Shown in pieces: positions 8,152-61,024 of a stretch of DNA of 64,000 bases (position 1 is the stretch's first letter; every line of letters starts with the position of its first letter). The position numbers and the translations under genes were made by a program. Location of the stretch: the IMG/VR virus record IMGVR_UViG_3300025770_000870, positions 124,001 through 188,000 of that record; one strand, written 5' to 3'. The notes under the pieces are model-generated. The model did not search any database. It worked only from the letters and a program-made list of their open reading frames with translations, and was not told the DNA's origin.

Positions 8152-9219
8152 ATGATTAAGAAGTTTAATCAATTTCTAGAAAATAAAAATTCTAGTTACC
8201 TTCTTTACTATGCGTTTGATTGGGATGATAATATATTAAATATGCCAACCGTAATACACCTAGATAAAAAAGATGGTGACTCTTGGGTACCTATTAATGT
8301 TTCAACATCTGATTTCGCTGATGTCAGAAATGATGAGAATTATAGAATGTTGAATAATGATCCTGATGAGGCTTTCTCTGAGTTTAGAGATGGCGGTCCT
8401 CGAGGGGTTGAAGCCTTTTTGATTGATACTAAAGCAGCTATTGCTAGTAACAGTTATGGTCCGGCTTGGGATGATTTTATTGAATGTTTGACAAATGGGT
8501 CAATATTTGCTATAATCACCGCTAGGGGTCACGAACCAGAGGCTATAAGATTAGGTATTGATTGGATACTTGATAATGTTCTAACCGAAGACGAAGTATA
8601 TGATATGTATAATAACTTATTAAAGTTTGAGTATATGTTTGATAGAGTTGAAGGTGAGAAAATATTAAAAGGTGATCCATCTAAGAATGAATTGGTTAAG
8701 AAGTATTTAGATCAATGTGATTTAGTTGGTGTTTCGGCTCCTTCTAGAGGTGGTTCTCCTGAGAATCCGGAAAAGGAAAAGGAAAACGCTCTTATGGATT
8801 ACAAGACTAAGATTAATGACTTTGCTAAAAACCTAGGTATGGAAGCAAAAGTTGGTTTTTCTGATGATGATTTAGGTAATGTTAAACATATTGAAGATTT
8901 AGTTGATAGTTTACATCACGAAAAATTCCCTAATATTGTTGAGTTTGTAGTTAAAAATACAAAAAACCCAGAAGATGTTACCAAAAAAGTTAGAACAATG
9001 AATCTAATAGAGGGTAATGATACCCCAGGTATGGAATCATCTGTTTTAGCATTCACTCAATTTAATAATATGACAAATAAACTGTATCCAACGGATGATA
9101 AAACAAGACAAGATGACTTTGCTAACCAATTCAGAAGACAATCTGAATATCTAGCTAAAACTTCTAAAGACATCTTAGGGAAAAAGAAAGTAAAGAAGAA
9201 ATTTCCTAAAAAGAAATAA
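8152..9219 (+). CDS. HAD-superfamily hydrolase-like protein with CTS-like N-terminus
   Basis: Motif I FDWDDN, motif II ITARGH, motif IV FSDDD; N-terminus MIKKFNQFLE. Confidence 0.7.
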   Translation: MIKKFNQFLENKNSSYLLYYAFDWDDNILNMPTVIHLDKKDGDSWVPINVSTSDFADVRNDENYRMLNNDPDEAFSEFRDGGPRGVEAFLIDTKAAIASNSYGPAWDDFIECLTNGSIFAIITARGHEPEAIRLGIDWILDNVLTEDEVYDMYNNLLKFEYMFDRVEGEKILKGDPSKNELVKKYLDQCDLVGVSAPSRGGSPENPEKEKENALMDYKTKINDFAKNLGMEAKVGFSDDDLGNVKHIEDLVDSLHHEKFPNIVEFVVKNTKNPEDVTKKVRTMNLIEGNDTPGMESSVLAFTQFNNMTNKLYPTDDKTRQDDFANQFRRQSEYLAKTSKDILGKKKVKKKFPKKK

Positions 9220-11974: not shown

Positions 11975-12472
11975 TTACTTAAATTTTCTAGTATTCTTAT
12001 AACTTTTAGATTCACCTACTTTCATAGCATATCTTTCATCCTCATCCATTTCATCAAATTCTTTATCAGCTAATTTGTTTGATTCACCTTCTATAAAAGT
12101 AACAACTTCATCCGCCGTTTTGAATTTTTTATTACCAACGTGAAACATCTCTGTTTCTGATGGGAAAATTATCTTTTGTCCATTATATTCTACTTTACCA
12201 TTAGTAACCTCTGATCCTAATTTATCAGCAACTTCTTGTAGTTTATTTGCATAAACATCTCCACCTTCTTCTTCCATTTCTTCTTCCATTTCTTCAGATT
12301 CTAAATCTTCAATGGGAGCTTCTTTAACGTCAGATTCTAAATCTTTGAATTCATGTTCTAAGTCACGAATAGCTAATTCATGTTCTTGTTGGTTTGTATC
12401 AAACTCTTCTTCTGATTCAAACTCTTCGTTTACTCTTTCGTTAACAAATTGATTATATTTTTTAATCATCAC
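11975..12472 (-). CDS. Acidic protein with CTS-like N-terminus
   Basis: MMIKKYNQFVNE; Glu-rich; TTAATATATA at 12498-12507 on the minus strand. Confidence 0.75.
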   Translation of the reverse strand: MMIKKYNQFVNERVNEEFESEEEFDTNQQEHELAIRDLEHEFKDLESDVKEAPIEDLESEEMEEEMEEEGGDVYANKLQEVADKLGSEVTNGKVEYNGQKIIFPSETEMFHVGNKKFKTADEVVTFIEGESNKLADKEFDEMDEDERYAMKVGESKSYKNTRKFK

Positions 12473-13664: not shown

Positions 13665-13696
13665 AAATTATATATCTATATTTAATATATACCCAT

Positions 13697-14455
13697 ATGC
13701 TAAATTATAAAGAGTATTTAAAGGAGGCCCAAGATAATCAAGTCGTTGTGTTGGATGATGGACAAGGTGGTAATATGTTTAAGACTGTTAAAAATGGTAG
13801 TAAGAACTCAATTACTTATCTTAATGCTGTTATAAAAAGGTTTATCGAAAGTGTTTATGGATCATCTGGGTTTGTTTATGGTAAACATACTGATATATTT
13901 ATCGATAATAAGATAATTAATGGTGAGTATATATCAAAGATGGTTAATAATTACACCATTTTTAAAAATGTGATAAGAATTAATAATATTAAAGAGGAAG
14001 AATCTTTTTATAATTTTATGTTATCTAATCTGAATAATATTTATTCACCAAATGGTAAATTCTTTTTAGAACAATCATTACCTATTTTAATAAACACAAC
14101 TAGAAGGGGAAATGTACTTGAAAAAATGGCTAAGGAATCCTTTTTAAAGTATTCTAAAGAAAAAGATATCGAGATTACTATACAAAACCCTTCTGTTGAT
14201 GAAGATATAAACGGTGTTGATTTCAAATTCTTATCCAATGGTAGAAGTTTTACTGTTCAAGTAAAGCCATTTACTGATTATAAGTATATTGGTGATAAAA
14301 TTTTCATAAAGACAGAAGGATCTTTATCATTGAATACAAACTACTTGATACTATGTGATGGTAAGAATTGTATTAAATTAAGAAATACACCCTCTAATCC
14401 AGTTAAAATAAAAGGTAATACTTTTATTTCAAGTAAATCTAATCTACTTATTTAA
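13697..14455 (+). CDS. PD-(D/E)xK-like nuclease-fold protein with CTS-like N-terminus
   Basis: EDINGVDFKF...FTVQVKP pattern; N-terminus MLNYKEYLKE; TTAATATATA at 13682-13691. Confidence 0.55.
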   Translation: MLNYKEYLKEAQDNQVVVLDDGQGGNMFKTVKNGSKNSITYLNAVIKRFIESVYGSSGFVYGKHTDIFIDNKIINGEYISKMVNNYTIFKNVIRINNIKEEESFYNFMLSNLNNIYSPNGKFFLEQSLPILINTTRRGNVLEKMAKESFLKYSKEKDIEITIQNPSVDEDINGVDFKFLSNGRSFTVQVKPFTDYKYIGDKIFIKTEGSLSLNTNYLILCDGKNCIKLRNTPSNPVKIKGNTFISSKSNLLI

Positions 14456-16061: not shown

Positions 16062-16433
16062 TCAGGCGCAATTTGGTCAGATAACAGAACTATACGCCTA
16101 TATGGTATTTGTTATGCTGATTGATAACCACTTATATTCTCACCATCATAATAGTCGATACCTATCCAATTTTCATAATCTTCTACATTCACGTTTATAT
16201 AATTCCCATTGTGGTAATAATTCACCAGGTATAATAATAAACAATATAGGATCTGCCATTAGCTCTGTACCTCTTTTAACCTTTGTTTGTTTTGATTTTA
16301 ATTTTACAATATCAACCTTTGATACATTATCAACTCCATATCTCTCTAAACAGGTTTCTTTTATTTTAGATATGATTGATTTTTTATTTATCTTATATTG
16401 ATTATAGTAATGGAAATAGTAGTAACCTATCAC
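16060..16433 (-). pseudogene. Degenerate HNH-type homing endonuclease fragment
   Basis: KIKETCLERYGVDNVSK repeat motif, WELYKRECRRL, then frameshifted ENWIGIDYYDGENI; multiple stops. Confidence 0.6.
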
Positions 16434-19631: not shown

Positions 19632-21613
19632 TAAATCTTAAATTTAATTGTAGCGAAGAAGTTGAATGGTGGATTAACAAAGAAGTGTCTATCTGTACCA
19701 ACTGCGTATCCATTAGTGTAATAACTTTCATTAGTTATGTTATTTACTCTAATACTTAAACTGTGTTGTTTATAGAATTTATAATCAACTTGAGCATTTA
19801 ATACCACAAAATCTGGTGTTGTGAGTGTGTTCTCCATATCAATATAAGACTCTGAGTGGTACTTCACATCAAATCCAACTCTTATTCTATCTTTTGAATC
19901 TTTAATCACCACACCTTGGTTAATTATCAAATTAGGTGTGTATAATGGACTAAATTCTTTCCCATCATCATTAATTCTGTTATAAGAGTATGATGATGTA
20001 TTAACTAATAATAAGTTAATTTTCTTTTTACTAAATAAACTTAAAGTCATATCTAATTCAATACCACTTCTAAAAGAGTTTTCAACATTAGTCATTAACG
20101 GTAAACCATTTGAACCAATTGCTCCTAATAATGTTATTTCATTTTTGAAATCCATATAGTATAGATTACCTTGTAACTTAAAGTTATCTAATGTTATATT
20201 AGTACCTAATTCATAATCAACAACCGATTCTGGTTTAACATCTATGTAACTAATAGGATCATCTTCTCCCATAAAAATATCATTTCTTGTTGGTTCTCTT
20301 TGTGATTGACCAACAGAAGCATAGAAGTTATAGTGTTTACATTTCGTGAACATTATACCACCTTTTGGGTTGAAGAATGTCCATTCAAATGGTGCCATAT
20401 CCATAGTACCTTGATACTTGAAATCAACGTATCTAACTTGAGCATCTCCGAAAAGAGTAAACTTCTTTATATCATATCCGAATTTAACAAATGATGATAC
20501 TTCGTTTTTAAGTCCTTTATTAGAATATAGTTCATCTGTGTTTGCTAATACAGTCATAGCATGTCGTCTATCATACATATTACCACTAACACCAATATTC
20601 AATCTATATTTATTACCAGTTAAGTTATAGTTAGAGGTTAATCCATAGAAGTTAGAACCTAAATTGAAGTTAAGAACATCATCCCCTCCACCAAGTGGTA
20701 GTAAATCTAATCCCCAATCTCCATCTAATCTATTATAGAAAGCGGTAGTCGTTAAATTTGACTTGTTAAAAAAGTGTTTGTGTTTTAAGATAACCATACT
20801 TTGTGTAAAGTCGTCATTTTCTCTAGTAGTATTATAGTTAGTTCTTGGTTCTGATTTTATATCATCTTCTGAAACTGCGAACCAAGCCATTTCATTAGTT
20901 GTGTGTCCATTGAATGCTGTTATTTTAACAAAATCCTTTTCTCCATAATAACCACCACTTAAAAAGAATGATTGTCCTTCACCACCTGAGTTATATTTGT
21001 ATCCATCACTCGCGTAATTTGAATATCTAGTATAAAAGGCTGTTTTATTTTTTAGTAATCCTGTTGAGTTTTCAATACTAACTCTATAAGTATTAAATGA
21101 TCCATATCCAATTTGTCCTTCTGTTCCTTTCTTTAATCCCGTTGGTGATTCAAAATTAATAGAACCAGCATATGAGGAAACACCGTTTGTTGATGTACCA
21201 ACACCACGTTGTATCTGCATTGACCTAATTGAGTTTGTAAAATCTGGGTAATTTGAGAAATATACACCTTGGTCCTCTGGTTCATTAAGAGGAACCCCAT
21301 CGAGTGTCATATTAATTCTAGTTTGGTCAATACCTCTCAATCTAAAGTAAGTATATCCCATATTGTGACCGCCATCTGTTGATGATGTTACACTTGGTGT
21401 TGTGTTTAATAACAACGGTAATTCTTGTGTATGATACATAACATCTATATCATCTTTACTGATTGTTTTCTGAGTGACTGGTGTTTTAGATCCAGCTCTA
21501 ATTCCTTGTATAGTAACTTCTTCAATTTGCACCATTGATGTGTCAACCTTTAGAGTATCCTGTGAATACGATGTTGATGTTGCTAATAAAAATAAAAATA
21601 GTAATTTCTTCAT
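19631..21613 (-). CDS. TonB-dependent outer-membrane receptor (Bacteroidota vitamin-uptake type)
   Basis: Signal peptide; plug with GYTYFRLRGIDQTRIN...QIQRGVGTSTNG; beta-barrel ending in alternating aromatic residues; 1-nt overlap with pnuC. Confidence 0.92.
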   Translation of the reverse strand: MKKLLFLFLLATSTSYSQDTLKVDTSMVQIEEVTIQGIRAGSKTPVTQKTISKDDIDVMYHTQELPLLLNTTPSVTSSTDGGHNMGYTYFRLRGIDQTRINMTLDGVPLNEPEDQGVYFSNYPDFTNSIRSMQIQRGVGTSTNGVSSYAGSINFESPTGLKKGTEGQIGYGSFNTYRVSIENSTGLLKNKTAFYTRYSNYASDGYKYNSGGEGQSFFLSGGYYGEKDFVKITAFNGHTTNEMAWFAVSEDDIKSEPRTNYNTTRENDDFTQSMVILKHKHFFNKSNLTTTAFYNRLDGDWGLDLLPLGGGDDVLNFNLGSNFYGLTSNYNLTGNKYRLNIGVSGNMYDRRHAMTVLANTDELYSNKGLKNEVSSFVKFGYDIKKFTLFGDAQVRYVDFKYQGTMDMAPFEWTFFNPKGGIMFTKCKHYNFYASVGQSQREPTRNDIFMGEDDPISYIDVKPESVVDYELGTNITLDNFKLQGNLYYMDFKNEITLLGAIGSNGLPLMTNVENSFRSGIELDMTLSLFSKKKINLLLVNTSSYSYNRINDDGKEFSPLYTPNLIINQGVVIKDSKDRIRVGFDVKYHSESYIDMENTLTTPDFVVLNAQVDYKFYKQHSLSIRVNNITNESYYTNGYAVGTDRHFFVNPPFNFFATIKFKI

Positions 21614-22798: not shown

Positions 22799-22868
22799 TT
22801 CGTAGAAATATTATTACTAAGTATATCATGTAAATCTTTTTTTGTTTAGTTATTTTAATATATATGTT

Positions 22869-23195
22869 ATGGTAAAAAAATGGAATCAATTTATTAGAGA
22901 ATTCATAGAGAACTCGGATAATGTTATCGATATTAAAATGCAAGAGATAAGAACACTTATAAATGGTGTTTCTGATGGCCAGAACATAGTATATGAATGG
23001 GAGAATAAAAATGATCATCAATTAATAGTTAATTTCACTAAAGATGATTTATCTATTAGATATGAATTTGACATCGATAATTTGATAGTTAAAAAAATAG
23101 TTGGTGATACTGTTGATTTCACCAATCAGGCAAAATCCATAAGTGGTGGGTTAATTAATATTGAAAAGGATATACATATGGTTTTAAGTATTTAA
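22869..23195 (+). CDS. Hypothetical protein with CTS-like N-terminus
   Basis: ATG at 22869 gives MVKKWNQFIREFIE, right after a TTTAATATAT motif; the ORF track starts at 22842. Confidence 0.7.
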   Translation: MVKKWNQFIREFIENSDNVIDIKMQEIRTLINGVSDGQNIVYEWENKNDHQLIVNFTKDDLSIRYEFDIDNLIVKKIVGDTVDFTNQAKSISGGLINIEKDIHMVLSI

Positions 23196-26542: not shown

Positions 26543-26684
26543 TTAACCTTTAGCTAAAAAGGATGAGTTGATGAAATAAATATCTTCCCACTCAGGATCA
26601 CGACCACTTGTATTTTTTTAGTAGTATATCATAAACATCTGATTTTATATCATTACTTTCGTTAAATTTTCTTAGATATTTCAT
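26543..26684 (-). pseudogene. Decayed CTS-tagged mini-gene
   Basis: ATG overlapping the upstream TGA gives MKYLRKFNESNDIKSDVYDILLKKYKWS* (26598-26684); another frame past an A7 run continues GRDPEWEDIYFINSSFLAKG*. Confidence 0.5.
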
Positions 26685-27253
26685 GTCTTAGCAACTATTT
26701 CTAACCATTTTGATTGATTATCATAAAGAATTCCTTCCTTTATCTCAGATGAAACTATCTCAAATTCATTTGATACTAAATCTTCCCAAGTTTCTTTATT
26801 AAATATTGTTTTACCTGTTTGTATATCATTTACTAACTTAACAGTAAATACTAAATACTCTTTTGTGATTCTACTAATGTCTTTGAATATACTTTGTAAT
26901 TCTGACTCACTGAAATAGTGAAGTCCTAATCTAGAATAAACTAAATCAAATGAATTATCAGGAAATGGGAATTTGTTTTTGGTGTCGTGTTTAACACAGT
27001 TAATCTTCTGATTAACGTGGTCTACATATTGTTGATTGTTTTCTGTTCCGAATACTACATATCCTCTTTTTAAGAGTTCTAAAGCATCAGCCCCGTTACC
27101 ACAAGAAATTTCTAAGATAGAACCACTTGAAATAAGTGATTGTATTTTCTCTACTAACTCAATATCAGCATTGTCATCTAACTTTAGTAGAGTGTCTTGA
27201 TTATTTAATTCTTCTTGATTCTCGAATATTTTTCTAGTGAGTAAGTGTTTCAT
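26681..27253 (-). CDS. Class I SAM-dependent methyltransferase with CTS-like N-terminus
   Basis: ILEISCGNG motif I, FPFPDNSFDLVYSRLGLHYF; N-terminus MKHLLTRKIFE. Confidence 0.85.
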   Translation of the reverse strand: MKHLLTRKIFENQEELNNQDTLLKLDDNADIELVEKIQSLISSGSILEISCGNGADALELLKRGYVVFGTENNQQYVDHVNQKINCVKHDTKNKFPFPDNSFDLVYSRLGLHYFSESELQSIFKDISRITKEYLVFTVKLVNDIQTGKTIFNKETWEDLVSNEFEIVSSEIKEGILYDNQSKWLEIVAKT

Positions 27254-27269
27254 TAGAGTATATATAAAA

Positions 27270-27992
27270 CTACTCTAATCTTTTTTTAGTTAAGTCAATA
27301 GCTTTCTGATTTATATCACATCCAATGAAATCCCTCTTTAGCTCCTTACAAACAACAGCACATGTACCGCTTCCTAGGTAAAAATCAGCTACCAAATCAC
27401 CTTCATCTGACGAAGCTCTTATTATTCTATCAATAAGTTCTTTCGGTTTCTGTGTATCATATCCAACTCGCTCCTTCTTATCGTTTTGTCCTAGAATATT
27501 CATTTTCCATACATCACCAATTACTTTACCGTCTTTGTGATAGTACTTTTCTTTAGCATAACCTCTTGGTGCACTTTTAGCATAAGGTTCTCTGATTGGG
27601 TTGAACTTATAATTGTTACTTTTAGTGAATCGGTATATTATATCATGTCTTTTTCCAAAATCTAATTTCTTTCTGGGAGCTGTATTGTAATTCCATATGA
27701 TTTCGTTTCTCATATTATCATACCCGAATATGTCTTCCATTATACAACGTATCCAGTGATTGATTTTAGTATCCATTTGTAGGTATATGGTTCCTGTATC
27801 CTTTAATACGCGGTGCATCTCCTTTAATCTAGGTATATAGTGTTCTTCTATATCAGATTTTATGGGTTTTAAGTCTTGGTAGTCTTTGAATTTCCTACCA
27901 GTCCCATATAAGATATCTACGTATATCAAATCTATTGAGTTGTCATCTAATGTTTTTAGTAAATCAAGATTATCTTGGCATGATATGTTCAT
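27270..27992 (-). CDS. Beta-class DNA amino-methyltransferase with atypical motif IV (DILY)
   Basis: SIDLIYVDILYG, MHRVLKDTGTIY, YDTQKPKELIDRII, ADFYLGSGT, FIGCDIN. Confidence 0.85.
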   Translation of the reverse strand: MNISCQDNLDLLKTLDDNSIDLIYVDILYGTGRKFKDYQDLKPIKSDIEEHYIPRLKEMHRVLKDTGTIYLQMDTKINHWIRCIMEDIFGYDNMRNEIIWNYNTAPRKKLDFGKRHDIIYRFTKSNNYKFNPIREPYAKSAPRGYAKEKYYHKDGKVIGDVWKMNILGQNDKKERVGYDTQKPKELIDRIIRASSDEGDLVADFYLGSGTCAVVCKELKRDFIGCDINQKAIDLTKKRLE

Positions 27993-28040: not shown

Positions 28041-28361
28041 ATGAATCATATTAAAAAATACGAATCTTTCGATTTTAGTAATACTTTACCAATATCATCT
28101 AAATCAGACTTAACAATGTATTATAATTGCAATGTTTGTAATGCTCTTTGGGAATCATTTAATGATCCTTGTGTTAAGTGTAGATTTTGTGATACGGGTA
28201 ACATTAAAGAATTGGATGAAGATGGTTACTATGATATGGTTGAGTCAAGGTTAGAGGATGATGAAGTAGAAGATTTGAGAAGTGAGAGGGAAGATAGTAA
28301 AGATAAATTTGTTAATTTATTATCATTAAAAGCAAAAGAGAAGAAAAAGTATGTCAATTAA
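28041..28361 (+). CDS. Zn-ribbon protein with CTS-like N-terminus
   Basis: ATG at 28041 gives MNHIKKYESF; CNVC...CRFC. Confidence 0.7.
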   Translation: MNHIKKYESFDFSNTLPISSKSDLTMYYNCNVCNALWESFNDPCVKCRFCDTGNIKELDEDGYYDMVESRLEDDEVEDLRSEREDSKDKFVNLLSLKAKEKKKYVN

Positions 28362-38193: not shown

Positions 38194-38265
38194 AATACAC
38201 AACCATCCATATAATTTATAAACAGAAAAGTCTAGCGTTCTGTTTTTATATTTAATATATACTTT

Positions 38266-39012
38266 ATGAAACTTACTAAATATTTAGAATTTGTCCAGTC
38301 TGATTTAGAACCTGTTAAATCTTTCTATATTAAAGATGAATTAAACCCAAAAGTTTGGGAAAATGAAGAGATGATACCTGAGGTAAGAGAACAATTACTT
38401 CAAATTGCTCAAGATTTTTACGATGGTACAGATTTAAAGGCTGATGTTCAAGACATTATACTAACTGGATCTTTGGCTAATTATAATTGGTCGGAAAAAT
38501 ACTCTGATTATGATATACATATATTAATTGATTTCAAGGATGTTAATGATGATGAAGAATTGGTTAAGAAATATGCGGATAGTGTTAAGAACATATGGAA
38601 CGGATTACATGATATTGAGATTGGAGGATATGAGGTTGAAGTTTATATACAAGGTATAAAAGAAATACATAAAGCATCTGGGATTTATTCAGTTATGAAT
38701 GATGAATGGAATGTAAAGCCGAGTAAAAAAGATTTCGAACCAAATGAAGAATTAATCAAAGAAAAGGCTAAATCAGCTATGATGATGGTTGATGATTTAG
38801 AGGGAGATATCGATGAAGATAAATATGAAGAATTTCAAAAGAAGGTAAAGAAAGTTTGGGATAAGATTAAGAATTATCGTAAGAGTGGATTAGCTACACA
38901 AGGTGGTGAATTCTCTACTGGTAATTTAGTATTTAAGTTACTTAGAAGAAATGGATATATTGGAAAAGTTCTTGTTCTAAAGAGAAAATCTTATGATAAT
39001 CAATTTAATTAA
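38266..39012 (+). CDS. Pol-beta-superfamily nucleotidyltransferase with CTS-like N-terminus
   Basis: DIILTGSLANYNWS...SDYDIHILID (GS and DxD), EVEVYIQ; N-terminus MKLTKYLE; TTAATATATA at 38252-38261. Confidence 0.8.
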   Translation: MKLTKYLEFVQSDLEPVKSFYIKDELNPKVWENEEMIPEVREQLLQIAQDFYDGTDLKADVQDIILTGSLANYNWSEKYSDYDIHILIDFKDVNDDEELVKKYADSVKNIWNGLHDIEIGGYEVEVYIQGIKEIHKASGIYSVMNDEWNVKPSKKDFEPNEELIKEKAKSAMMMVDDLEGDIDEDKYEEFQKKVKKVWDKIKNYRKSGLATQGGEFSTGNLVFKLLRRNGYIGKVLVLKRKSYDNQFN

Positions 39013-39015
39013 ATT

Positions 39016-39711
39016 ATGGCTAGAATTTCAGAAATAGAAGAATTGCTTAAAGAAGTATTTGATGAGGAAAAGGGTGTTGTTAACTCTGTTGAATCTATTT
39101 ATGAGTCACCCGAAGAAGGTGATTTTCTTAAATTGGTTATATCTATACATGGTTTAGTAACGGAAGATACTACTATCATACACACAAAGTTTATATTTAA
39201 AGTTGATTTAGAAAAAAGAAAAACCGTAGAGGATTCTTTTATTTATTTATATGATGTTAATTGTGTTTATCATAAATTAGATTTCAAAAATATTATTGAC
39301 TTGAAAGATAAGATAACTAATATTATAGAATCTAAAGATTTTGGAGAGGACTTACAAATACTTTCTGACTTCATTGAGGCACCTGCTATGTTCTTAAATT
39401 ACTACATGAGAAGACACAAGATAACAGATTATTCTATTTTTGATGTGGTGTATCAACCAAAATTTAAGACTACTCCGTGTGATAAAACAACGTTTGATTT
39501 CAAAGTCAATATTAATAATAACTATGATATGGGATTATCTATTAGTAAGGTAGATCGAGATGAAGAAGAGAATGAAATTGACTCCTATAAATTCCAATTT
39601 AGGTTTATGGATGATATAGAAACACTTGAAACAGATTCTTTGTCAAATGTTCACTTTTTTATCGGGTCTAATATCGCTAAGATGTTGGATAAAAAGTTAA
39701 AGAATAAATGA
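39016..39711 (+). CDS. Hypothetical protein
   Basis: 231 aa ORF 3 nt after the nucleotidyltransferase gene. Confidence 0.75.
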   Translation: MARISEIEELLKEVFDEEKGVVNSVESIYESPEEGDFLKLVISIHGLVTEDTTIIHTKFIFKVDLEKRKTVEDSFIYLYDVNCVYHKLDFKNIIDLKDKITNIIESKDFGEDLQILSDFIEAPAMFLNYYMRRHKITDYSIFDVVYQPKFKTTPCDKTTFDFKVNINNNYDMGLSISKVDRDEEENEIDSYKFQFRFMDDIETLETDSLSNVHFFIGSNIAKMLDKKLKNK

Positions 39712-40358
39712 AACATCTAGAGAAATTTTATAACTATATTACGGAGTCTGATTCATATTCTAAAGATGAATTGAATGAATTGTTAGTACCTATTAGGGAT
39801 TTGGGTGTGTCTTGTGATATTGGTGATAAAAGAACAATAACAGAGGGTAAATTTTATGGTAGTGAATACATTAGTGTTGGATTTTCATTTAATGACTATG
39901 AAAAAACACCTGGTTTTGGATACCGAACCGATATTATGTCTGATAATAGAATATGGGATTTTTTCGATGAGTTAATTTCTTTGAGAAATAGGTTAGAGAA
40001 TGATAAAATATTAATACATTTTTATAACACTAAGTATGGTAGTTATGGTGTTAGTATAATGTTTGTTACTGGTGAGGTAACTGATAATAAATTATTTGAA
40101 CTAGAAAAGGTTTATAATGTATTAAGAACTAGATCTAATTCTGGTACAACAGATTTTTATTATAGTATGTTACTGAAATTAAATAAAGAGGAACCCTCTA
40201 TAAATATTGAGGTTTCTCAATATACTAGTAGGAAATTCAAATACTTTACTAGACAAATTGATATGTCTGGTTTTGATATTAGAATTGTAATTATTGGAGC
40301 TGGTAGTTATGGTTATGGCGGTACAAAAGCAGATATTAAGATAACACCTAAAGGTTAA
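39708..40358 (+). CDS. Hypothetical protein with CTS-like N-terminus
   Basis: MKHLEKFYNYITE; 4-nt overlap with the upstream stop codon. Confidence 0.7.
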   Translation: MKHLEKFYNYITESDSYSKDELNELLVPIRDLGVSCDIGDKRTITEGKFYGSEYISVGFSFNDYEKTPGFGYRTDIMSDNRIWDFFDELISLRNRLENDKILIHFYNTKYGSYGVSIMFVTGEVTDNKLFELEKVYNVLRTRSNSGTTDFYYSMLLKLNKEEPSINIEVSQYTSRKFKYFTRQIDMSGFDIRIVIIGAGSYGYGGTKADIKITPKG

Positions 40359-41662: not shown

Positions 41663-41709
41663 ATAAAAACATTTCTTTTTTAATTATATGAATATTTAAT
41701 ATATAGTTT

Positions 41710-41868
41710 ATGAAATATATTAAGACTTTTGAATCTTTCTATATTGGATGTTGGATGATATTGGACGGTCACCATAGGTTATTGAAAGATATTAATAATG
41801 GTATTGTTAATATAAAGGATAGAATTTTGGACTTAAAAAGTTTTTTATCAAAAAATGATTTTTGGTAA
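41710..41868 (+). pseudogene. 52-aa CTS-tagged stub containing a ParB/Srx-like motif
   Basis: MKYIKTFESFYIGCWMILDGHHRLLK...; TTAATATATA at 41696-41705; too short for a full ParB domain; not in the ORF track. Confidence 0.55.
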
Positions 41869-47965: not shown

Positions 47966-48526
47966 CTATTTTTGCTCTTGAGATGAGAGATTTTTTACAT
48001 GATCCCTCATATCTTGCTCCATTTTAACCATTTTTTCTTTGTGGTCTTTTTCTTTTCCTACTAAATCTTGTTGTATTTCACTTATTTTGCTGGATCTTTC
48101 GGACATTCTATTTTTAATATCACTTATTTTGAATTCAACAGCTTTTTTTGTTTCACTATCCTCTGATAAACCAAGAGATTGTTGTAAATCATCTAATTTT
48201 ATTTTATCATTTGAATTATCATCTTGTGATTTATTTATATCCTTTTCTAACTTAGCTAAGTGTGCATATTCTACTAGAAAGGGATTTCTATCCTTTCCGC
48301 TCTGAACATCTGTCTCACCTAGTATCTTTTCTAGCTCTGGTTTGATATCAGCGCCTTCTTTAGAATATAATGCATCGATTTGTGATTTCTTAGTCTTATA
48401 GTCTTTCATATTAGACATAATAGTATTCATCTTCTCTTTAGACATAACAACGTCTGGAGTATCAGTATCTCCTATCTCAAATTCATCAGCTTCTAGAAAT
48501 AATTTATACTTTTTTAGATATTTCAT
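47966..48526 (-). CDS. Coiled-coil protein with CTS-like N-terminus
   Basis: MKYLKKYKLFLE; heptad-rich; 4-nt overlap with the upstream gene. Confidence 0.75.
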   Translation of the reverse strand: MKYLKKYKLFLEADEFEIGDTDTPDVVMSKEKMNTIMSNMKDYKTKKSQIDALYSKEGADIKPELEKILGETDVQSGKDRNPFLVEYAHLAKLEKDINKSQDDNSNDKIKLDDLQQSLGLSEDSETKKAVEFKISDIKNRMSERSSKISEIQQDLVGKEKDHKEKMVKMEQDMRDHVKNLSSQEQK

Positions 48527-51369
48527 TTTTCTAAATAACCTTTTGCTTTATCAACTGATATATCACCATAAGCATTTTGTGTTGCTGATGTTGGTAGTAA
48601 GTATTGTTCACCGGAACCTTCACCTTCTTTTACATAAAATGTGTATAAATCTTCTATCTTGCCTAAGTCAACTTCTTCTGTTTTCAGTTCTGAGGAACGT
48701 TCTTTAAGAGTAGTTAAATTAATAGATTTCAATTTTAAATTGATACCTTCTTTTAAGAGACCACCTTTAGCATCGAATAATTTATTAGATATTCTAGCAT
48801 AATGTATAGTAGAGTCATTATCATTTAATGATGATGATAAGTCACCTTTCATACCCTTAACATTTTCACCTTTAATATATTTACTGATGTATCCAAATGT
48901 TTTTGAATATTTCAAATAAGTAAAATCACTATCACCTGCTATTACTATCATAAAATATGAATTATTTAGGTTAAAAATACAACCAGGTTTATCATTTACC
49001 TCTTTAGACTTTTTGAACTCAGCTATTATATTACCTTTTGTTTCATCAGCAACTTCAGCATTTCCTTCAACCTCTTTTCCACCCGTATAATCTAATTTAT
49101 TTGAATCAACATCAACTTTGAAGTATTTGCTGATAAATTTATGTTGTGCGCCACCACCTTTTCCACCCGAGGACCTGTATAAAGTATCTCCGTCTAACAT
49201 ATCGTTCATAAATTTGAGTAGTACTTTACCACCACCTTCTACTCTACCACTTTTCTTACCTTTATCACTAATTGATGTTGGTGAAACATTTACCCTATCA
49301 TCTGCTTTACCAACTTGTATAATAGTCGATTCATCGAATAAAACTGTATATTTTGAATCCTTTATTATATCAAGAACAGCATCTTCCCATTTGGTGAATA
49401 TTCTTATGTTTCTATAAGGGCCCATTCCAACTTTAAATCCACTTGATTCAGTATTAACCTCAGGAGATCCACTACCTATATACTCATACTCTCTGAATTT
49501 TTTATTAGATACTTTACCACCACTTCTACCCGTTGGTATTGTCTGTGATGTGTGTAATTTATAAGCTCTGTTAAATATCTTAACAATTTCTAGTATAGGA
49601 TCAATACCGTTTATTTTATATGTAGTACCCTCTTTCTCCATTTTTACCAACCTCTGTTCCAGATTTTTAGCATCTTGTTCGGTAACAGACCATTTTCTCA
49701 AATATTCTTCACTGAAAAATTTATTCCATGGTATGGATAAATCATATCTATTCTCTTTTTCGATAGATTGATCCTCTTTTGAAACATCTCCAGATGGTTT
49801 ATCTTTTGTTGTATCATCAACCACATCTTCACCTTCCGCTTCAAATATTTTTCTGAAACTTTTATATCTTAATAACTTACCTTCGTTTTTCTCTACCTTA
49901 TCCTCTGGTTTTTCATTTTCTGTAACCTCTGGCTCCTGTTCTAAAATAGCACTCATTGTTTCATTAAATGATTTTATTGAATTTTTCAATGCACCATCTA
50001 TATCTTTCCCCCATTCATCAATTTCGGTTAAATCTCCTGATTTTGAAACACTATATAAATTTTTAATATGATTACCAAGTGCCTCACTACCGGATAATAA
50101 ACTATCTAAATTTTCTGATACTGATGTTTTCTTAATATGATCATATAGGTTTTTAACAGAAGCATATTTTTGCATCATTTCCGCGTTACCAGCTGATAAT
50201 TTATTTTTATTGTCATCAGACATTTTATCATAACTTGATATCAATCCTTGTAATTCTACTAGATTATTAGGATCTTCATTCATAAAATTAAATAATGCCT
50301 TTGTAGCATTTAGAATAGGTATATTATCTTGCTTTTTATCATCAGTTCCCTCATTTAGTGAGAATTTTCTAAAACTATCGTTCATAGACTCGGCATATAA
50401 TTCGGTATCTGGTACTTTATTCCATGTTTCAGCTTTAGCAACAGATTTTAGAAAACTTTCTCCTTCTTTGGATTTTTTGAAATCCTCCATAGTACCAGAA
50501 TTTCCTTTTTCTGACCAAATTTTGTAAGCAACTTCCTGTTTAAATTTCTTTCTAGTATGTTCTCCTGGTTTAAGATTAGCTCCCTTACCAAGAGCTTTTT
50601 GACTTTTTAGCAACTCAGCTAGTTTTTTCTGATAAAGATCTTCACCTTTAACTCCCCATTCAAAATGAACCTGTTCGGGTTCTTCAACTTCTTTTGGAGC
50701 TGGTAATGACCTTACTGATTTAATCTTCTTAAAAGACTCTAATATACTAGATATGGATTTTATATTTGCCATATAAAGTTGATAAGGTATTTTTTCACCA
50801 TCAGTTTCCTCACCATCAGTTTCCTCATCATCAGTTTCCTCATCATCAGTTTCCTCATCATCAGTTTCCTCCATTTCTTTAAGTTCTGCTAAAAATTCAG
50901 TTAACTTTTCTAAAACTTCTTGTCTATCACCTTCACTTTCATCAGAGTATAATACCACTTCTGTTATTGCATAAATAGTTTCAGTTGTAACTCTTATTAT
51001 TTCATCTAAATGATTTTTACCTTCCGCTTCAGGTTCTTTTATTGCTTTTATTAATTTCCCTATTAAAATAGAAATAGACAACATATCAATTTCTTTATTT
51101 GTTGCTTCATCAATCTCAGCTCCGTTTAATTTAGCAGTATCTACTAAATAATCAAATTGTGTTTTTAGTCTTTTAATAACAGAGTCTATTCTAACTAAAT
51201 CTATTCCTATTTGAGCCTTTCTAGCAAATGAGTGTAACATTCTTCCTAATAATGAGTCTCCCCATGCTATATCATTGGCGAATGGTCCTGCTCCTGAAAC
51301 AACAGCTTCGTTAACGACTTTATATTTTGCTGACTTTAAGTATTCAGTTCTACTTGATAGATACTTCAT
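48523..51369 (-). CDS. Large putative internal virion protein
   Basis: 948 aa; MKYLSSRTEYL start; internal SFRKFSLNE and LLRYKSFRKIFE segments; acidic repeats. Confidence 0.7.
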   Translation of the reverse strand: MKYLSSRTEYLKSAKYKVVNEAVVSGAGPFANDIAWGDSLLGRMLHSFARKAQIGIDLVRIDSVIKRLKTQFDYLVDTAKLNGAEIDEATNKEIDMLSISILIGKLIKAIKEPEAEGKNHLDEIIRVTTETIYAITEVVLYSDESEGDRQEVLEKLTEFLAELKEMEETDDEETDDEETDDEETDGEETDGEKIPYQLYMANIKSISSILESFKKIKSVRSLPAPKEVEEPEQVHFEWGVKGEDLYQKKLAELLKSQKALGKGANLKPGEHTRKKFKQEVAYKIWSEKGNSGTMEDFKKSKEGESFLKSVAKAETWNKVPDTELYAESMNDSFRKFSLNEGTDDKKQDNIPILNATKALFNFMNEDPNNLVELQGLISSYDKMSDDNKNKLSAGNAEMMQKYASVKNLYDHIKKTSVSENLDSLLSGSEALGNHIKNLYSVSKSGDLTEIDEWGKDIDGALKNSIKSFNETMSAILEQEPEVTENEKPEDKVEKNEGKLLRYKSFRKIFEAEGEDVVDDTTKDKPSGDVSKEDQSIEKENRYDLSIPWNKFFSEEYLRKWSVTEQDAKNLEQRLVKMEKEGTTYKINGIDPILEIVKIFNRAYKLHTSQTIPTGRSGGKVSNKKFREYEYIGSGSPEVNTESSGFKVGMGPYRNIRIFTKWEDAVLDIIKDSKYTVLFDESTIIQVGKADDRVNVSPTSISDKGKKSGRVEGGGKVLLKFMNDMLDGDTLYRSSGGKGGGAQHKFISKYFKVDVDSNKLDYTGGKEVEGNAEVADETKGNIIAEFKKSKEVNDKPGCIFNLNNSYFMIVIAGDSDFTYLKYSKTFGYISKYIKGENVKGMKGDLSSSLNDNDSTIHYARISNKLFDAKGGLLKEGINLKLKSINLTTLKERSSELKTEEVDLGKIEDLYTFYVKEGEGSGEQYLLPTSATQNAYGDISVDKAKGYLEK
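50795..50872 (-). repeat. 15-nt coding tandem repeat x5 (ETDDE/ETDGE)
   Basis: catcagtttcctca(t/c) units. Confidence 0.85.
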
Positions 51370-56839: not shown

Positions 56840-57121
56840 CTAATTTACTTCCATAGTTACTGATAACCCAGCACTTTCCAATTTATCTTTCATTGTTGAA
56901 ATAGTTTCTAAGTCTCCGTACTTTACATCACAGATTCCTTTGAAGTGTACAAGATGAGCACATTGATTAGCTTGTTCTTGTTCATGGTCACAAACCTTCA
57001 TTAAACAAGTGATTACCCAATCAAATGAATTGTGATCATCGTTATGTAAATCAAGTCTAAATGGTTTAGAAAGTATTTCATCTACCTTAGTCTCACTTTT
57101 TTTCTTTGTAATAGTTGCCAT
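56840..57121 (-). CDS. clpS: ClpS N-degron adaptor
   Basis: LHNDDHNSFDWVITCLMKVC...AHLVHFKG.C.VKYG. Confidence 0.9.
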   Translation of the reverse strand: MATITKKKSETKVDEILSKPFRLDLHNDDHNSFDWVITCLMKVCDHEQEQANQCAHLVHFKGICDVKYGDLETISTMKDKLESAGLSVTMEVN

Positions 57122-58766: not shown

Positions 58767-59360
58767 ATGAAGCATATTAGAACGTATGAAAAATATCGTA
58801 TTGTAAAGAACAGATCTGAAATTATCAAAGAAGCTGTTCTACAAGTTAATGATATTTATAAAGTAAAGACAATGATTGATATTCCTCAATCTTTGATTAA
58901 CTCTTATGTTAAGAAAGTTAAAGAAACTACTGGTAAGAACCTAAGACAATTTTTTGGTGATGTTGACATCGCTGAGGAAATTGTTAAATATATTAATATG
59001 AACAATCTTGATATAGAGAAGATTCCAGGTGGAGCTTTGATGGGTGGTCAAGAAGAAACACAAGTTCAGCAAGCTCAACCAGAAGCACAACCACAAGCTC
59101 AAATGCAACCTCAGGTTCAACCAGAAGCACAACAAACACAACCACAAGGTGAGTTTGAAGAGCCACAAGCAGATGCTCAAGTACAGGCTCAAGATGGTCA
59201 AGTACAAGTTCAAGCAGATGGTCAAACACAAGTACAAGATGGTCAAGTACAGGCTCAAGATGGTCAAGTACAGGCTCAAGATGGTCAAACACAAGGTCAA
59301 GTACAAGGTCAAGCACAAGACGAAGATGAAGAAGAGGACGAAGAAGAACTTCCACTTTAA
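58767..59360 (+). CDS. Protein with CTS-like N-terminus and Gln-rich repeat tail
   Basis: MKHIRTYE; QAQDGQV repeats; TTAATATATA at 58733-58742. Confidence 0.75.
   Translation: MKHIRTYEKYRIVKNRSEIIKEAVLQVNDIYKVKTMIDIPQSLINSYVKKVKETTGKNLRQFFGDVDIAEEIVKYINMNNLDIEKIPGGALMGGQEETQVQQAQPEAQPQAQMQPQVQPEAQQTQPQGEFEEPQADAQVQAQDGQVQVQADGQTQVQDGQVQAQDGQVQAQDGQTQGQVQGQAQDEDEEEDEEELPL
59175..59320 (+). repeat. 21-nt coding repeats (QVQAQDG)
   Basis: caagtacaggctcaagatggt and degenerate copies. Confidence 0.8.
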
Positions 59361-59415: not shown

Positions 59416-59433
59416 ATTTAATATATACTTACA

Positions 59434-60048
59434 ATGAGATACCTAAAGGCATATGAGAATTATAATACTGATACAACACTTATAATTGTTGATGTTCAAA
59501 AATCATTTAAGAAATTCTTTTCTGAGATGTACATAAATAAATTAAAAAAGTATTGTAATGAATTTGTCAATGTTTATCAAATCTGGGATAACCATACAGA
59601 TGGTAAAATTGTTGATAAAGACTACTTATATGATAAAAATCCTGAAATTCCAATACATGATGATTTATACCATTTTCCTAACCAAAGTGAGTTAATCGAA
59701 AAGAGATATAATTATGATGTAGATGCTGATTTTTATAAAAAAATTCTAGATAAGGAAGTTTATAAAGAGATTAGTGATAAAGAGGATAATAAACAATTAA
59801 AAAAAGGTGACTTTTTCCGAACAAAAGAGGGAACTATTATAGTTTATATTGGTAATAATCATAAATGGTTCCAAGTTCCTATTAAATTATATAAACATCT
59901 TGTTGAATTAAGGGGTAAGAGTGTTATTATTGTTGGTGGTTCTGATTCTGAATGTTTGGAGGATATTATTACATCTGCTGAAAGTCTTGGTGTTAATATT
60001 AAAAGAGATTATAAGTATATCTACTCAGCAAATCATTGTCCTATCTAA
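59434..60048 (+). CDS. Isochorismatase/nicotinamidase-fold cysteine hydrolase with CTS-like N-terminus
   Basis: LIIVDVQKSF, IWDNH, IEKRY, VGGSDSECL (Asp/Lys/Cys-like triad); N-terminus MRYLKAYE; TTAATATATA at 59418-59427. Confidence 0.6.
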   Translation: MRYLKAYENYNTDTTLIIVDVQKSFKKFFSEMYINKLKKYCNEFVNVYQIWDNHTDGKIVDKDYLYDKNPEIPIHDDLYHFPNQSELIEKRYNYDVDADFYKKILDKEVYKEISDKEDNKQLKKGDFFRTKEGTIIVYIGNNHKWFQVPIKLYKHLVELRGKSVIIVGGSDSECLEDIITSAESLGVNIKRDYKYIYSANHCPI

Positions 60049-60454: not shown

Positions 60455-61024
60455 ATGAAATATCTGAAATTTTTTGAATCTTATAGAGGAACTGTATCTG
60501 TTAATAGAGATATTTTTATAAAGGTTTTATCTGATTATAGTAGTATATATGATGATGGTTTGGTTACACAATTAGAGGAATTGGGATTTGAGAGTAGTGA
60601 TGTAATTGCTGATATGATAGAAGATTCATTGAATAATGGTGATCGTATAAGTTTAGAGGCTATAACACTTTTAGTTGATGAGATATCAAGAGGTAATTCT
60701 GAGAGGAGCGCAAGTAAGTTACAGGATATTTATAATGAATGTGAATATCATTTAAATAATAGTACTGTTGATGTTATTGATAACTTGAAAGATATATTCT
60801 CTGAATATGTTGATGATAATAAAGCAATGATATATAAAACTGGTGATAAATCTGACAACCGATGTGTCGTTTTACTAAAACAGGTTGATGTTTTGTTAAA
60901 TATCGATTTCGATGAAGTATTAAATAGGGTTAAAGAATTTGTAAACTTAAAACATATGGAATATGTTGGTAGTAAAGACCGAATTAAATTTGAGTTTTAT
61001 GAAAGATATCCTGATGAAGATTAG
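60455..61024 (+). CDS. Hypothetical protein with CTS-like N-terminus
   Basis: MKYLKFFES. Confidence 0.72.
   Translation: MKYLKFFESYRGTVSVNRDIFIKVLSDYSSIYDDGLVTQLEELGFESSDVIADMIEDSLNNGDRISLEAITLLVDEISRGNSERSASKLQDIYNECEYHLNNSTVDVIDNLKDIFSEYVDDNKAMIYKTGDKSDNRCVVLLKQVDVLLNIDFDEVLNRVKEFVNLKHMEYVGSKDRIKFEFYERYPDED

Follow-up and report, generated by a model that had tools for sequence, protein, structure and literature searches.

The 64,000 nt window examined here (positions 124,001 to 188,000 of the IMG/VR virus record IMGVR_UViG_3300025770_000870) belongs to a huge marine phage of Bacteroidetes type that has a T4-like head and falls in the Mahaphage clade. Translation table 11 yields long ORFs throughout, and an alternative genetic code was therefore dispensable. 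A first-pass annotation had proposed that five enzymes encoded in the window, namely a nucleotidyltransferase (NTase), a methyltransferase, a nuclease, a phosphatase and an isochorismatase-like hydrolase, share an N-terminal tag resembling the CTS of phage T4 and make up an injected enzyme toolkit. All five ORFs were found in place (Table 1), the methyltransferase ORF, cited as 27253, being 26681-27253 on the minus strand. The focal NTase gene is at the end of a virion gene block, after the gene for a virion structural protein.

Table 1. Tagged ORFs, their neighbours and the parts of the focal NTase gene, in window coordinates
Feature	Coordinates	Strand	Tag or sequence	Remark
HAD-fold phosphatase	8152..9219	+	type B (MIKKFNQFLEN)	nearest: polynucleotide 3'-phosphatase domains
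Small acidic protein	11975..12469	-	type B (MIKKYNQFVNE)	tag pattern
252-aa protein	13697..14455	+	type B (MLNYKEYLKE)	candidate PD-(D/E)xK nuclease, lead only
Small protein	22869..23195	+	type B (MVKKWNQFIRE)	tag pattern
Class I SAM methyltransferase	26681..27253	-	moderate type A (MKHLLTRKIFEN)	tag score 16.6
DNA N6/N4 methylase adjoining the methyltransferase	27270-27992	-	untagged	N6_N4_Mtase E 8e-48
Small protein	28041..28361	+	type A (MNHIKKYESF)	tag matrix
Late-type promoter-like motif	38253..38262	+	TTAATATATA	ends 4 nt before the NTase ATG
Focal ORF, 248 aa, Pol-beta-superfamily NTase	38266..39012	+		phrog_36119
N-terminal extension, aa 1-16	38266..38313	+	MKLTKYLEFVQSDLEP	degenerate tag outside the conserved domain
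Predicted NTase catalytic core, aa ~22-150	38329..38715	+		G68-S69, D81-x-D83, H85, E125
Predicted C-terminal helical bundle, aa ~160-248	38743..39009	+		invariant R205, N220, K224, R227
231-aa ORF downstream of the NTase	39016..39711	+	untagged	conserved neighbour
216-aa ORF	39708..40358	+	tagged (MKHLEKFYNYITE)	tag matrix/pattern
52-aa ORF	41710..41868	+	type A (MKYIKTFESF)	promoter motif at -12
186-aa protein	47966..48526	-	tagged (MKYLKKYKLFLE)	between a 948-aa ORF and the tail sheath gene
197-aa protein	58767..59360	+	type A (MKHIRTYEKY)	tag matrix
204-aa protein	59434..60048	+	canonical type A (MRYLKAYENY, score 23.9)	isochorismatase-like, weak lead
189-aa protein	60455..61024	+	type A (MKYLKFFESY)	tag matrix

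Nothing usable was obtained for the focal protein from Pfam and NCBIfam models or PDB sequences, and because these direct scans were empty the fold was taken from homologues and a predicted model. On that basis the ORF is a true two-domain Pol-beta NTase, as the first-pass annotation had it. G68, S69, the D81-x-D83 pair, H85 and E125 occupy invariant columns in 77 sequences, the hG[GS] and Dh[DE]h motifs lie at the spacing of the Pol-beta superfamily (9-13 residues), and the third carboxylate, E125, falls on strand 122-130 of the confident model. Curated models were matched by a number of the 76 homologues (PF01909 in 19, MTPAP-like_central in 8 and SidM_N in 2). When the model was used in Foldseek, every top row was an NTase, though at E 8e-4 or worse and TM 0.2-0.3, with CdnE the best (E 7.8e-4, TM 0.21). 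The C-terminal bundle, for which only generic helical-bundle matches were found, is probably a substrate- or NTP-binding domain. The family is very large and mostly phage.

The signature GS...DxD...E, the alpha/beta core and the C-terminal helical domain are shared with several Pol-beta families that have a helical second domain, including AadA and ANT, CdnE and CdnD, the DrrA/SidM AMPylase, TENT5 and the MNT antitoxins. The matches to these families are weak, however, and none is preferred. Alignments of the core alone gave Z of ~7 for the minimal NTases 2rff and 1ylq and ~6 for MNT, TENT5, CdnD/E/G and AadA, and the profile match to DrrA had an E of 0.011. Filing the protein as an aminoglycoside NTase, RlaP or CD-NTase was dropped, as Foldseek and VIA-align gave no subfamily-specific match. 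An identity as a CD-NTase of the CBASS type was rejected on the TM of 0.21, a Z of ~6 over the core only, and a neighbourhood of virion genes and ORFs without assignment with no effector adjoining.

Among the fold claims made for the other four ORFs, two held. The SAM methyltransferase is recognised by Pfam (Methyltransf_25, E 6e-14; PF13649 at 52.9 bits with a cut-off of 27, PF08241 at 50.2 bits). The HAD phosphatase had no Pfam match and no sequence or profile match in the PDB, and was recovered at the level of the fold and its invariant motifs (D23, D26, T123, K210 and D238-D240). Its AF2 model (pLDDT 70, with residues 1-14 below 50) was aligned by VIA with the T4 Pnkp phosphatase, a 3'-phosphatase, at Z 9.9 (rmsd 3.1, 132 residues aligned) and with Pnkp1 at Z 9.3, and the other rows were mostly HAD. 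The nuclease and the isochorismatase stay as leads. ORF 13697 has a visible D...QVK string, and its neighbours in the language-model Atlas fall in the RE_MjaI, Mrr_cat and RE_TaqI clusters (0.92; 174-176 features in common), a lead only; Pfam and PHROG scans of this ORF gave no match. In ORF 59434 residues D20, K90 and C174 are invariant and the isochorismatase Atlas score of 0.87 is a weak lead only, with no Pfam match (none to PF00857 even at E 10) and no PDB profile match. Searches using tblastn with both ORFs returned unannotated relatives only.

The shared N-terminal tag is real, well above chance and far more widespread than first reported. It takes two forms, both at the protein start: type A, MK[YH][LI]Kx[FY]E, and type B, K[YFW]xx[FY][ILV]xE. 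Between ~60 and 85 of the 353 ORFs in the 242-kb contig, or 17-24% of genes, begin with one or the other. The first-pass annotation was right that one portable peptide is carried by unrelated enzymes. When a position matrix was applied, 59 of the 353 N-termini scored above a threshold that was exceeded at just 6 of 1177 internal Met positions. The type B pattern was observed at 21 N-termini, with ~1 expected. The cargoes differ in fold and many are enzymes, the set including NUDIX, HD and GNAT enzymes and a lysozyme besides the NTase, methyltransferase and Pnkp-like phosphatase. In both predicted structures (NTase and HAD) the tag is a low-confidence N-terminal appendage, the low AF2 confidence covering residues 1-10 of the NTase. 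Retention is high in two of the families, at 102 of 120 homologues of ORF 8152 and 112 of 120 homologues of ORF 59434. Upstream of ORFs 13697 and 59434, the late-type promoter motif is found at -13 and -14, respectively.

For the five ORFs originally named, the observation was partly confirmed. Type A was verified on ORFs 59434 and 26681-27253(-) and type B on ORFs 8152 and 13697, but the focal ORF is degenerate. Its N-terminus, MKLTKYLEF, scores -7 to -8 with the type A matrix, has Leu at positions 3 and 7 and is without the final Glu of type B, and its tag is the weakest of the five. It may be a decayed, nonfunctional tag on an NTase that acts inside the cell. Such an enzyme might, for instance, repair or tail RNA ends together with the phage's Pnkp-like and HAD_SAK_1 phosphatases, or modify a virion component during assembly. 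The low score, the two Leu residues and the lack of a terminal [ILV]-x-E would be expected of a decayed tag, and RNA-repair-type domains are present in the window. The homologue in the T4-like cyanophage DSL-LC03 lies in the replication module, between the clamp-loader and DNA polymerase genes, and most of the 150 50%-identity representatives listed are without a type A tag, both of which also favour decay. We nevertheless consider decay unlikely, as the length and outline of the extension (MKxxK[YF][FL]EF...D[LF]E) are conserved across hundreds of orthologues and a minority of the close orthologues are canonical (MKHLKYFEF, MKYIKYFEF; also MKYIKSFEF), with 16 of 120 scoring above 10. The promoter-to-ATG spacing of the NTase gene is also that of the tagged class. 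Further evidence against decay comes from other phages, where the NTase domain is fused to ART-PolyVal, Peptidase_M23 or GNAT; fusions to Amidase_2 were also found. No capsid-protein domain, MuF-like or other, was detected when long NTase fusions were scanned against PHROG. Distant NTase homologues align only from residue ~16-24.

The same residue pattern is found in the head genes. Prohead protease and scaffold are fused in one protein, encoded by genome ORF 198213-200354, of which the protease-like region takes up about the first 165 residues. This protease-scaffold protein contains 11 tandem copies of a 14-residue unit with the repeat YSEY[IL]AE, then N. The pattern [YFW]x[EDQ][YF][ILV]xE occurs 26 times in the proteome, made up of the 11 scaffold repeats, 11 occurrences among the opening 10 residues of other proteins, and only 4 others. 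YKEYLKE, at the start of ORF 13697, fits the scaffold repeat pattern. The capsid protein specified by the contig is gp23-like (PF07068, 81.5 bits), and its N-terminal region includes SEYAE and SINE, then N. The match to the prohead protease is weak (PF03420, E 6e-5, below cut-off) and lies at the N-terminus of the scaffold-like ORF just upstream of the capsid gene; the PTm1 homologue of this gene is annotated as scaffold plus protease. A complex prediction that paired the whole tagged HAD protein with the scaffold repeat region in two copies returned 'no answer' (score 0.00), an outcome that carries no weight for or against binding.

In the 10-residue T4 CTS, positions 4 and 7 determine targeting and positions 8 and 10 determine processing, and the peptide carries foreign proteins into the head (PMC9026906). 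Cleavage by the T4 proteases follows a Glu, as at ITE-6 of Alt (PMC5694885), and the CTS peptide alone directs foreign proteins into the head and is removed after Glu (PMC9026906, PMC5694885). In both T4 and the phage described here, a short N-terminal peptide is found on unrelated proteins (in T4 on IPI-III, with Alt likewise packaged and trimmed), aromatic or hydrophobic residues three apart are followed by [ILV]-x-Glu, and the phage has a gp23-like capsid, a T4-type protease and a scaffold. The T4 spacing is fitted by type B, including ORFs 8152 and 13697, and is not fitted by the short type A. The focal ORF is a partial fit, with Y6, F9 and V10 present and position 12 occupied by Ser instead of Glu. 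There are also clear differences. The T4 signal is carried by a handful of proteins, not ~60-85, and the main variant here (MKYLKxFE) is in another register and often has no [LIV]-x-E. The tagged proteins are acidic (median pI 4.9) and include many enzymes, the motif occurs 11 times in the scaffold, and the present system is known from sequence alone. The internal proteins of T4 are basic.

A second comparison is provided by Sphingomonas phage PAU, a cultured relative by its capsid protein (25.7% identity). In PAU, 14 genes start with MKT[IL]xx[LF][YF]E and 11 of these are in the region of the head genes, where the portal, protease and capsid are also encoded. The PAU set includes the scaffold gp152, gp153 and gp154, the depositor annotation being internal capsid protein. 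The tag consensus is different, however, and the PAU genes are far fewer and clustered, not scattered as they are here, where tagged genes are dispersed and often in arrays distant from the head genes.

The tagged genes also share a late-type promoter motif. Of 85 tagged genes, 54 have the sequence [AT]ATATATA in the 40 nt upstream, compared with 62 of 268 untagged genes (OR 5.8, p 2e-11); the motif begins at a distance of precisely 11-14 nt from the ATG in 36 of the tagged and 18 of the untagged genes (OR 10, p 3e-13). About one third of the tagged genes are without it. It is also upstream of tail-fibre-like genes, a portal-sized ORF and the protease-scaffold gene. A terminator before the NTase promoter was considered after a hairpin was seen by eye, and was rejected when a terminator scan did not call one. 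In one marine metatranscriptome small contigs were found on neighbouring genes and none on the NTase ORF, such contigs being unable to reveal absence, strand or 5' ends. The fixed -12/-13 promoter spacing in 36 tagged genes fits a shared expression cassette too.

The tag could accordingly be read as part of a late-expression cassette, not a sorting signal. With the promoter 4 nt before the ATG, transcripts would be leaderless or near-leaderless. The demands of initiation would then limit variation in the first ~8 codons, or these codons would persist as a recombination handle by which cargo genes are shuffled, and the tagged enzymes, the NTase among them, would be cytoplasmic and late. The exact motif spacing agrees with this, as does the Lys codon at tag position 5, which favours AAG (20 AAG versus 13 AAA, compared with 28:72 genome-wide; p 1e-4), and the promoter-plus-tag regions of the NTase gene and 41710..41868 are alike enough for one DNA contig to align to both. 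However, every 24-mer among the 41 strict tags is distinct, with synonymous codons used freely and roughly as they are genome-wide. Substitutions conserve the residue type (Y/H/F, L/I, F/Y) and not the bases, and the fixed Glu is not specified by an A/U-rich codon. These patterns show that the tag is selected at the peptide level. The third of tagged genes that have no motif, the 11 recurrences of the residue pattern inside the scaffold, where initiation is irrelevant, and the use of other codons for the analogous peptides of PAU and T4 also count against a cassette, which we regard as an improbable explanation for the tag.

Recognition of the tag by a process outside the head, such as timed activation or degradation, a chaperone, or delivery to the tail, baseplate or membrane, was judged less likely still. 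A ClpS homologue is encoded in the window (56840-57121(-), PF02617, E 4e-16), but ClpS binds a free N-terminal F, Y, W or L and a protein beginning M-K is therefore unfit for it. Several tagged genes are beside tail genes, those at 47966-48526 and 48523-51369 adjoining the sheath gene and the NTase gene following that of a virion structural protein, and short type A tags such as MKYLKTFES do not contain the [LIV]-x-E of a T4-type cleavage site. Against such a role, the tags are neither hydrophobic nor signal-peptide-like and, outside the tags, the motif is abundant only in the head scaffold. The tagged genes of PAU cluster with portal, protease, scaffold and capsid genes, not with tail genes.

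Of the explanations weighed, the most likely is that the tag would serve as a capsid-targeting propeptide and that tagged proteins are packed and injected, to which we assign a probability of roughly 0.45. This reading is strengthened by the identity of pattern between tag and scaffold, the T4-like head, the shared promoter and the tag in PAU, and to that extent the proposed injected toolkit is partly supported. By imitating the 14-residue repeat in the protease-scaffold protein of the phage itself, the tag would let tagged proteins join the scaffold core as it assembles in the prohead. The T4-type prohead protease would trim them after Glu, and on degradation of the scaffold they would remain in the head and later be ejected with the DNA. 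Once in the host, the NTase may nucleotidylate a host protein, an RNA end or a small molecule before phage genes are expressed. Scaffold binding, cleavage, presence in the virion, ejection and the substrate of the NTase are all steps that we infer.

Delivery of enzymes with the DNA has parallels. The large heads of the phiKZ-like giant phages SPN3US and phiKZ contain ~50 different proteins that enter the host, and some of these carry propeptides that a T4-related protease cleaves after Glu (PMC5694885). Those propeptides, however, are long and dissimilar with the motif A/S-x-E, no common short tag has been described for them, and the clade and head gene set are different. The polyvalent proteins (Iyer et al. 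2017) also deliver enzymatic domains with the DNA, and fusion of the present NTase family to ART-PolyVal and GNAT in other phages recalls them, but they are single giant polypeptides and not separate small tagged enzymes. The Pol-beta NTases that Iyer et al. describe are minimal versions from firmicute conjugative elements, joined there to ArdC-N (PMC5512222).

A number of features count against packaging. The tagged share of 17-24% of genes is far larger than known internal-protein sets, the cargo is acidic, the genes are dispersed, the cyanophage homologue of the NTase is in a replication module, and the focal tag is the weakest.

Huge phages are known almost solely from sequence, with most genes lacking an assigned role. 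To our knowledge, a tag on a fifth of genes is beyond any internal-protein set. If the tag does direct proteins to the head, an N-terminal copy of the scaffold repeat would be a rule that groups a fifth of the proteome as candidate head cargo, and this rule could be applied to thousands of metagenomic contigs. It would also direct attention to enzymes with a possible action on the host ahead of any phage gene expression, likely counter-defence or takeover factors. It is conceivable, though doubtful, that the present marine lineage of Mahaphages loads ~100 different proteins by means of a scaffold-mimicking peptide and injects a ready-made early proteome. If true, this would be protein delivery on a scale for which we know of no precedent in a bacterial virus, and it could help to explain the large heads and genomes. 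Should the tag instead belong to an expression cassette, it would still mark a large set of co-regulated genes in Bacteroidetes phages whose late promoter is probably leaderless. A search of the literature found neither a head-cargo tag nor a tagged late-expression class of this kind described.

The untagged ORF immediately downstream of the NTase gene had no match in family searches, including Pfam and PHROG, but it has a counterpart in a 656-kb relative, where a 234-aa ORF is found in the same position after the NTase homologue.

Two patterns for the short N-terminal peptide, or tag, common to many proteins emerged from a survey of every one of the 353 contig ORFs, type A being MK[YH][LI]Kx[FY]E (e.g. 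MKYLKTFES and MKYIKKYKLFES) and type B K[YFW]xx[FY][ILV]xE (e.g. MIKKYNQFVNE and MKSYTEFLLE). A matrix built on the 41 strict type A starts was passed by 59 of the 353 N-termini versus 6 of 1177 internal Met positions, and type B was observed at 21 N-termini where about one was expected. Depending on stringency, 60–85 ORFs (17–24%) are tagged. As the 41 strict tags are all distinct 24-mers and their synonymous codon use is close to that of the whole genome, the tag is selected at the peptide level. The sole nucleotide-level bias was at Lys5 of type A, where AAG was used in 20 of 33 cases versus 28% genome-wide (p 1e-4), which probably keeps a long stretch of A from forming ahead of the following Lys codon. 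In both predicted models, those of the nucleotidyltransferase (NTase) at 38266 and of ORF 8152, the tags are flexible appendages. The strict type A DNA pattern was found 28 times in the contig and 53 times in its relative LR745206, and was absent from Lak-B5, PTm1 and PAU. Outside the window, small tagged paralogues form tandem arrays, one of which includes five consecutive genes starting MKYIKKYK[LIV]FE. These arrays resemble the hyperplastic internal-protein loci of T-even phages.

Other phages carry N-terminal tag variants of their own. In the Sphingomonas phage PAU (99500–121500), 14 genes start MKT[IL]xx[LF][YF]E and 11 of them lie in the head-gene region, near those for the portal, protease and capsid. 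Among these 11 are the scaffold gp152 and gp154, the latter an internal capsid protein in the depositor's annotation. In Maribacter phage Molly (7670–20347), protein starts include MNLKTLVET and MKTTELKSLIES; the pattern M.LK[ST]L[IV]E[ST] is carried by its NTase homologue as well as several small ORFs. The NTase homologue of cyanophage DSL-LC03 starts MNLESFLEQ.

Directly upstream of the contig's gene for a gp23-like capsid protein is a 713-aa ORF with weak N-terminal similarity to the T4 prohead protease family. The equivalent ORF in PTm1 is annotated 'prohead core scaffolding protein and protease'. The rest of the ORF includes 11 tandem 14-residue units (NIAYSEYIAENLDK type) with YSEY[IL]AE, usually followed by N, and this motif is that of the type B tags. 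A proteome-wide count of the pattern [YFW]x[EDQ][YF][ILV]xE gave 26 occurrences, comprising the 11 scaffold repeats, 11 within the first ten residues of non-scaffold proteins and four elsewhere. The N-terminal region of the capsid protein has SEYAE and SINE followed by N.

Loading of internal proteins by a capsid targeting sequence (CTS) is textbook T4 biology. The first ten residues of T4 IPIII are enough to bring foreign proteins into the head, positions 4 and 7 of the CTS being responsible for targeting and positions 8 and 10 for processing, and the T4 scaffold and propeptides are cleaved after Glu (PMC9026906, PMC5694885). The scaffold repeat of the contig resembles the T4 CTS, and the type B tag has exactly the residue spacing of the IPIII determinants. 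The best-supported reading, with a probability of roughly 0.45, is that the tag imitates the scaffold repeat and acts as a capsid-targeting propeptide. Proteins bearing it would become part of the scaffold core and be trimmed by the prohead protease, and the trimmed proteins would stay inside the head until they pass into the host along with the DNA. The probability is held at this level because five points oppose it: the size of the tagged class has no precedent, many tagged genes are small paralogues grouped in scattered arrays, about one-third of tagged genes lack the late-type promoter motif [AT]ATATATA, the tagged cargo is acidic (median pI 4.9 versus 5.6 for untagged proteins), and the short type A tags have no [LIV]-x-E site. 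In the literature searched, coverage of which was incomplete, we found no description of a scaffold-mimicking tag on about one-fifth of megaphage genes, enzymes included, and none of the papers listed by a full-text search combined 'capsid targeting' with a megaphage term.

The late-type motif, mostly TTAATATATA, precedes tail-fibre-like genes, a portal-sized ORF and the protease-scaffold and large terminase genes; when the ORF list was read by eye, it was not found upstream of clamp, clamp-loader, SbcD or helicase-type genes. Among the 85 tagged genes, 54 have it within 40 nt, compared with 62 of the 268 untagged ones (OR 5.8, p 2e-11; 1.6% in random windows). Its start lies exactly 11–14 nt ahead of the ATG in 36 tagged genes but in 18 of the 268 untagged (OR 10, p 3e-13). 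Contig-wide, TTAATATATA starts 12–13 nt before the ATG in about 50 genes, a set that largely coincides with the tagged genes (OR 10), and 25–37 nt before it in many virion genes. In T4 late-promoter geometry, a spacing of 11–14 nt would put the transcription start at or adjacent to the ATG, and such short spacing hints at late transcripts with little or no leader. This close coupling also favours the main rival, that promoter and tag might be a single expression or recombination cassette, but the peptide-level conservation and the scaffold repeats both speak against a purely RNA-level role. The cassette and capsid targeting are compatible rather than mutually exclusive.

The first-pass annotation had proposed that tagged enzymes may form an injected toolkit. 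The tag was indeed found on enzymes beyond the five ORFs it listed, as tagged proteins outside the window include a phage lysozyme, a NUDIX hydrolase, and GNAT, HD_4 and NFACT-R proteins. Among the five (see the table), four carry recognisable tags, while that of the NTase is degenerate and fails the matrix. The proposed folds were confirmed for the NTase, the SAM methyltransferase and the HAD phosphatase, leaving the nuclease and the isochorismatase as leads. ORF 8152 has a HAD fold that aligned best with the T4 Pnkp 3'-phosphatase (132 residues, Z 9.9, rmsd 3.1) and next with Pnkp1 (Z 9.3), and the motifs DxDD, T, K and DDD are invariant. The nuclease is a language-model lead (0.92) and the isochorismatase a weaker one (0.87) with invariant D20, K90 and C174; no family or PDB support was found for either.

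Features of the window and of the rest of the contig (window coordinates unless marked genome)
Feature	Coordinates	Strand	Details
NTase	38266-39012	+	248 aa; sole family match phrog_36119, unannotated; weakest tag of the five, MKLTKYLEF, score -7 to -8, ends Ser not Glu
SAM methyltransferase	26681-27253	-	moderate type A
HAD phosphatase	8152-9219	+	canonical type B
PD-(D/E)xK nuclease (lead)	13697-14455		canonical type B; YKEYLKE fits scaffold repeat pattern
Isochorismatase (weak lead)	59434-60048		canonical type A, kept in 112/120 homologues
TTAATATATA sites	38253-38262, 13683-13692, 22856-22865, 41697-41706, 59419-59428
Protease-like domain fused to scaffold-like region	genome 198213-200354 (outside window)		repeats, then long acidic tract
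Tagged-paralogue array	genome 19638-22107 (outside window)	-
Tagged-paralogue arrays	genome 8238-13359, 22142-25948 (outside window)
NAD salvage/uptake block	18097-21613	-	TonB-dependent receptor (Plug + barrel); PnuC NMN transporter, E 7e-45; NadR-like protein (cytidylyltransferase-like + AAA_28)
HAD_SAK_1 / HAD_PNKP phosphatase	57147-57662	-	untagged
ClpS adaptor homologue	56840-57121	-	PF02617, E 4e-16
Polymerase-like ORF, listed TTG start	14448-15758	-	with 16039-16401
Radical SAM enzyme	16905-17807	-	PF04055, E 3e-13

The NTase had no match in Pfam, NCBIfam or PDB sequences. Its family comprises 4043 proteins by word search, on contigs of up to 656 kb and in many cases with 70% identity and a length of exactly 248 aa, and 3795 clusters at 50% identity by exhaustive search. 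In an alignment of 77 diverse members, G68-S69, D81-x-D83, H85, E125, W148, P152, R205, N220, K224 and R227 are invariant, which is the hG[GS]...DxD...E signature of Pol-beta NTases. The AlphaFold2 model is confident (pLDDT 92.6, pTM 0.85), with an alpha/beta core (residues 22–150), a helical bundle (160–248) and residues 1–10 at low confidence. The leading Foldseek matches were all NTases (CdnE, CdnD, AadA/ANT, CCA-adding enzyme, TENT5, OAS1), though weak (best E-value 7.8e-4, TM 0.2–0.3). With the core only, VIA-align gave Z ~7 to the minimal NTases 2rff and 1ylq and ~6 to MNT, TENT5, Cdn and AadA. The best PDB match of the profile was the DrrA AMPylation domain (E 0.011, weak), and 76 longer homologues included PF01909 (19), MTPAP-like_central (8) and SidM_N (2). 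These structural matches, though all weak, agree on an NTase and single out no subfamily. In other phages the domain (residues ~17–245) is fused to ART-PolyVal, Peptidase_M23, GNAT or Amidase_2, and the fusion proteins showed no capsid domain of the MuF type.

The NTase gene follows a block of large genes, the last encoding a 'virion structural protein' (phrog_1645), with tail tube and sheath genes close by and the late-type motif 4 nt ahead of its ATG. Both the local gene order and the motif are kept in a 656-kb relative. The outline of its N-terminal extension is conserved, and a canonical MKHLKYFEF or MKYIKYFEF was present in 16 of 120 close orthologues. That the NTase is itself packaged is somewhat less likely than not, its odds being lowered because its tag is degenerate and the cyanophage homologue is located among replication genes. 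An RNA end-repair flavour was also seen in the untagged HAD_SAK_1/HAD_PNKP phosphatase and the tagged Pnkp-like HAD protein, to which the tagged NFACT-R RNA-binding protein (genome) adds; the NTase could be part of this theme.

The source is a single viral contig of 241,918 bp (29.9% G+C), the window being its bases 124001–188000, and long ORFs are obtained throughout with translation table 11. Near-identical DNA is present in seawater metagenomes of ~15 studies. The nearest public relative is LR745206, an uncultured phage of 634,780 bp (capsid protein 78% and NTase 80% identical), followed by LR756502, LR756504 and LR756501. Lak Prevotella megaphages, Tenacibaculum phages PTm1 and pT24, PAU and some flavobacterial phages are farther away. 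The Mahaphage clade includes genomes of 634, 636, 642 and 735 kb and has Bacteroidetes as predicted hosts (PMC7162821). Homologues have nearly equal coordinates in LR745206 and the contig (capsid 200752 versus 200440, NTase 161680 versus 162266, ORF 59434 182970 versus 183434), so the 242-kb contig, labelled 'linear' with a CheckV completeness of 89%, may be about the first 40% of a ~0.6 Mb genome.

The window also contains a three-gene NAD salvage/uptake block; an outer-membrane receptor gene is unusual in a phage. The ClpS homologue could redirect host ClpAP N-degron proteolysis. A radical SAM enzyme gene is also present. The polymerase-like ORF has an N-terminus resembling an internal part of a family B DNA polymerase, so the gene for that enzyme may be broken up or interrupted at this place.
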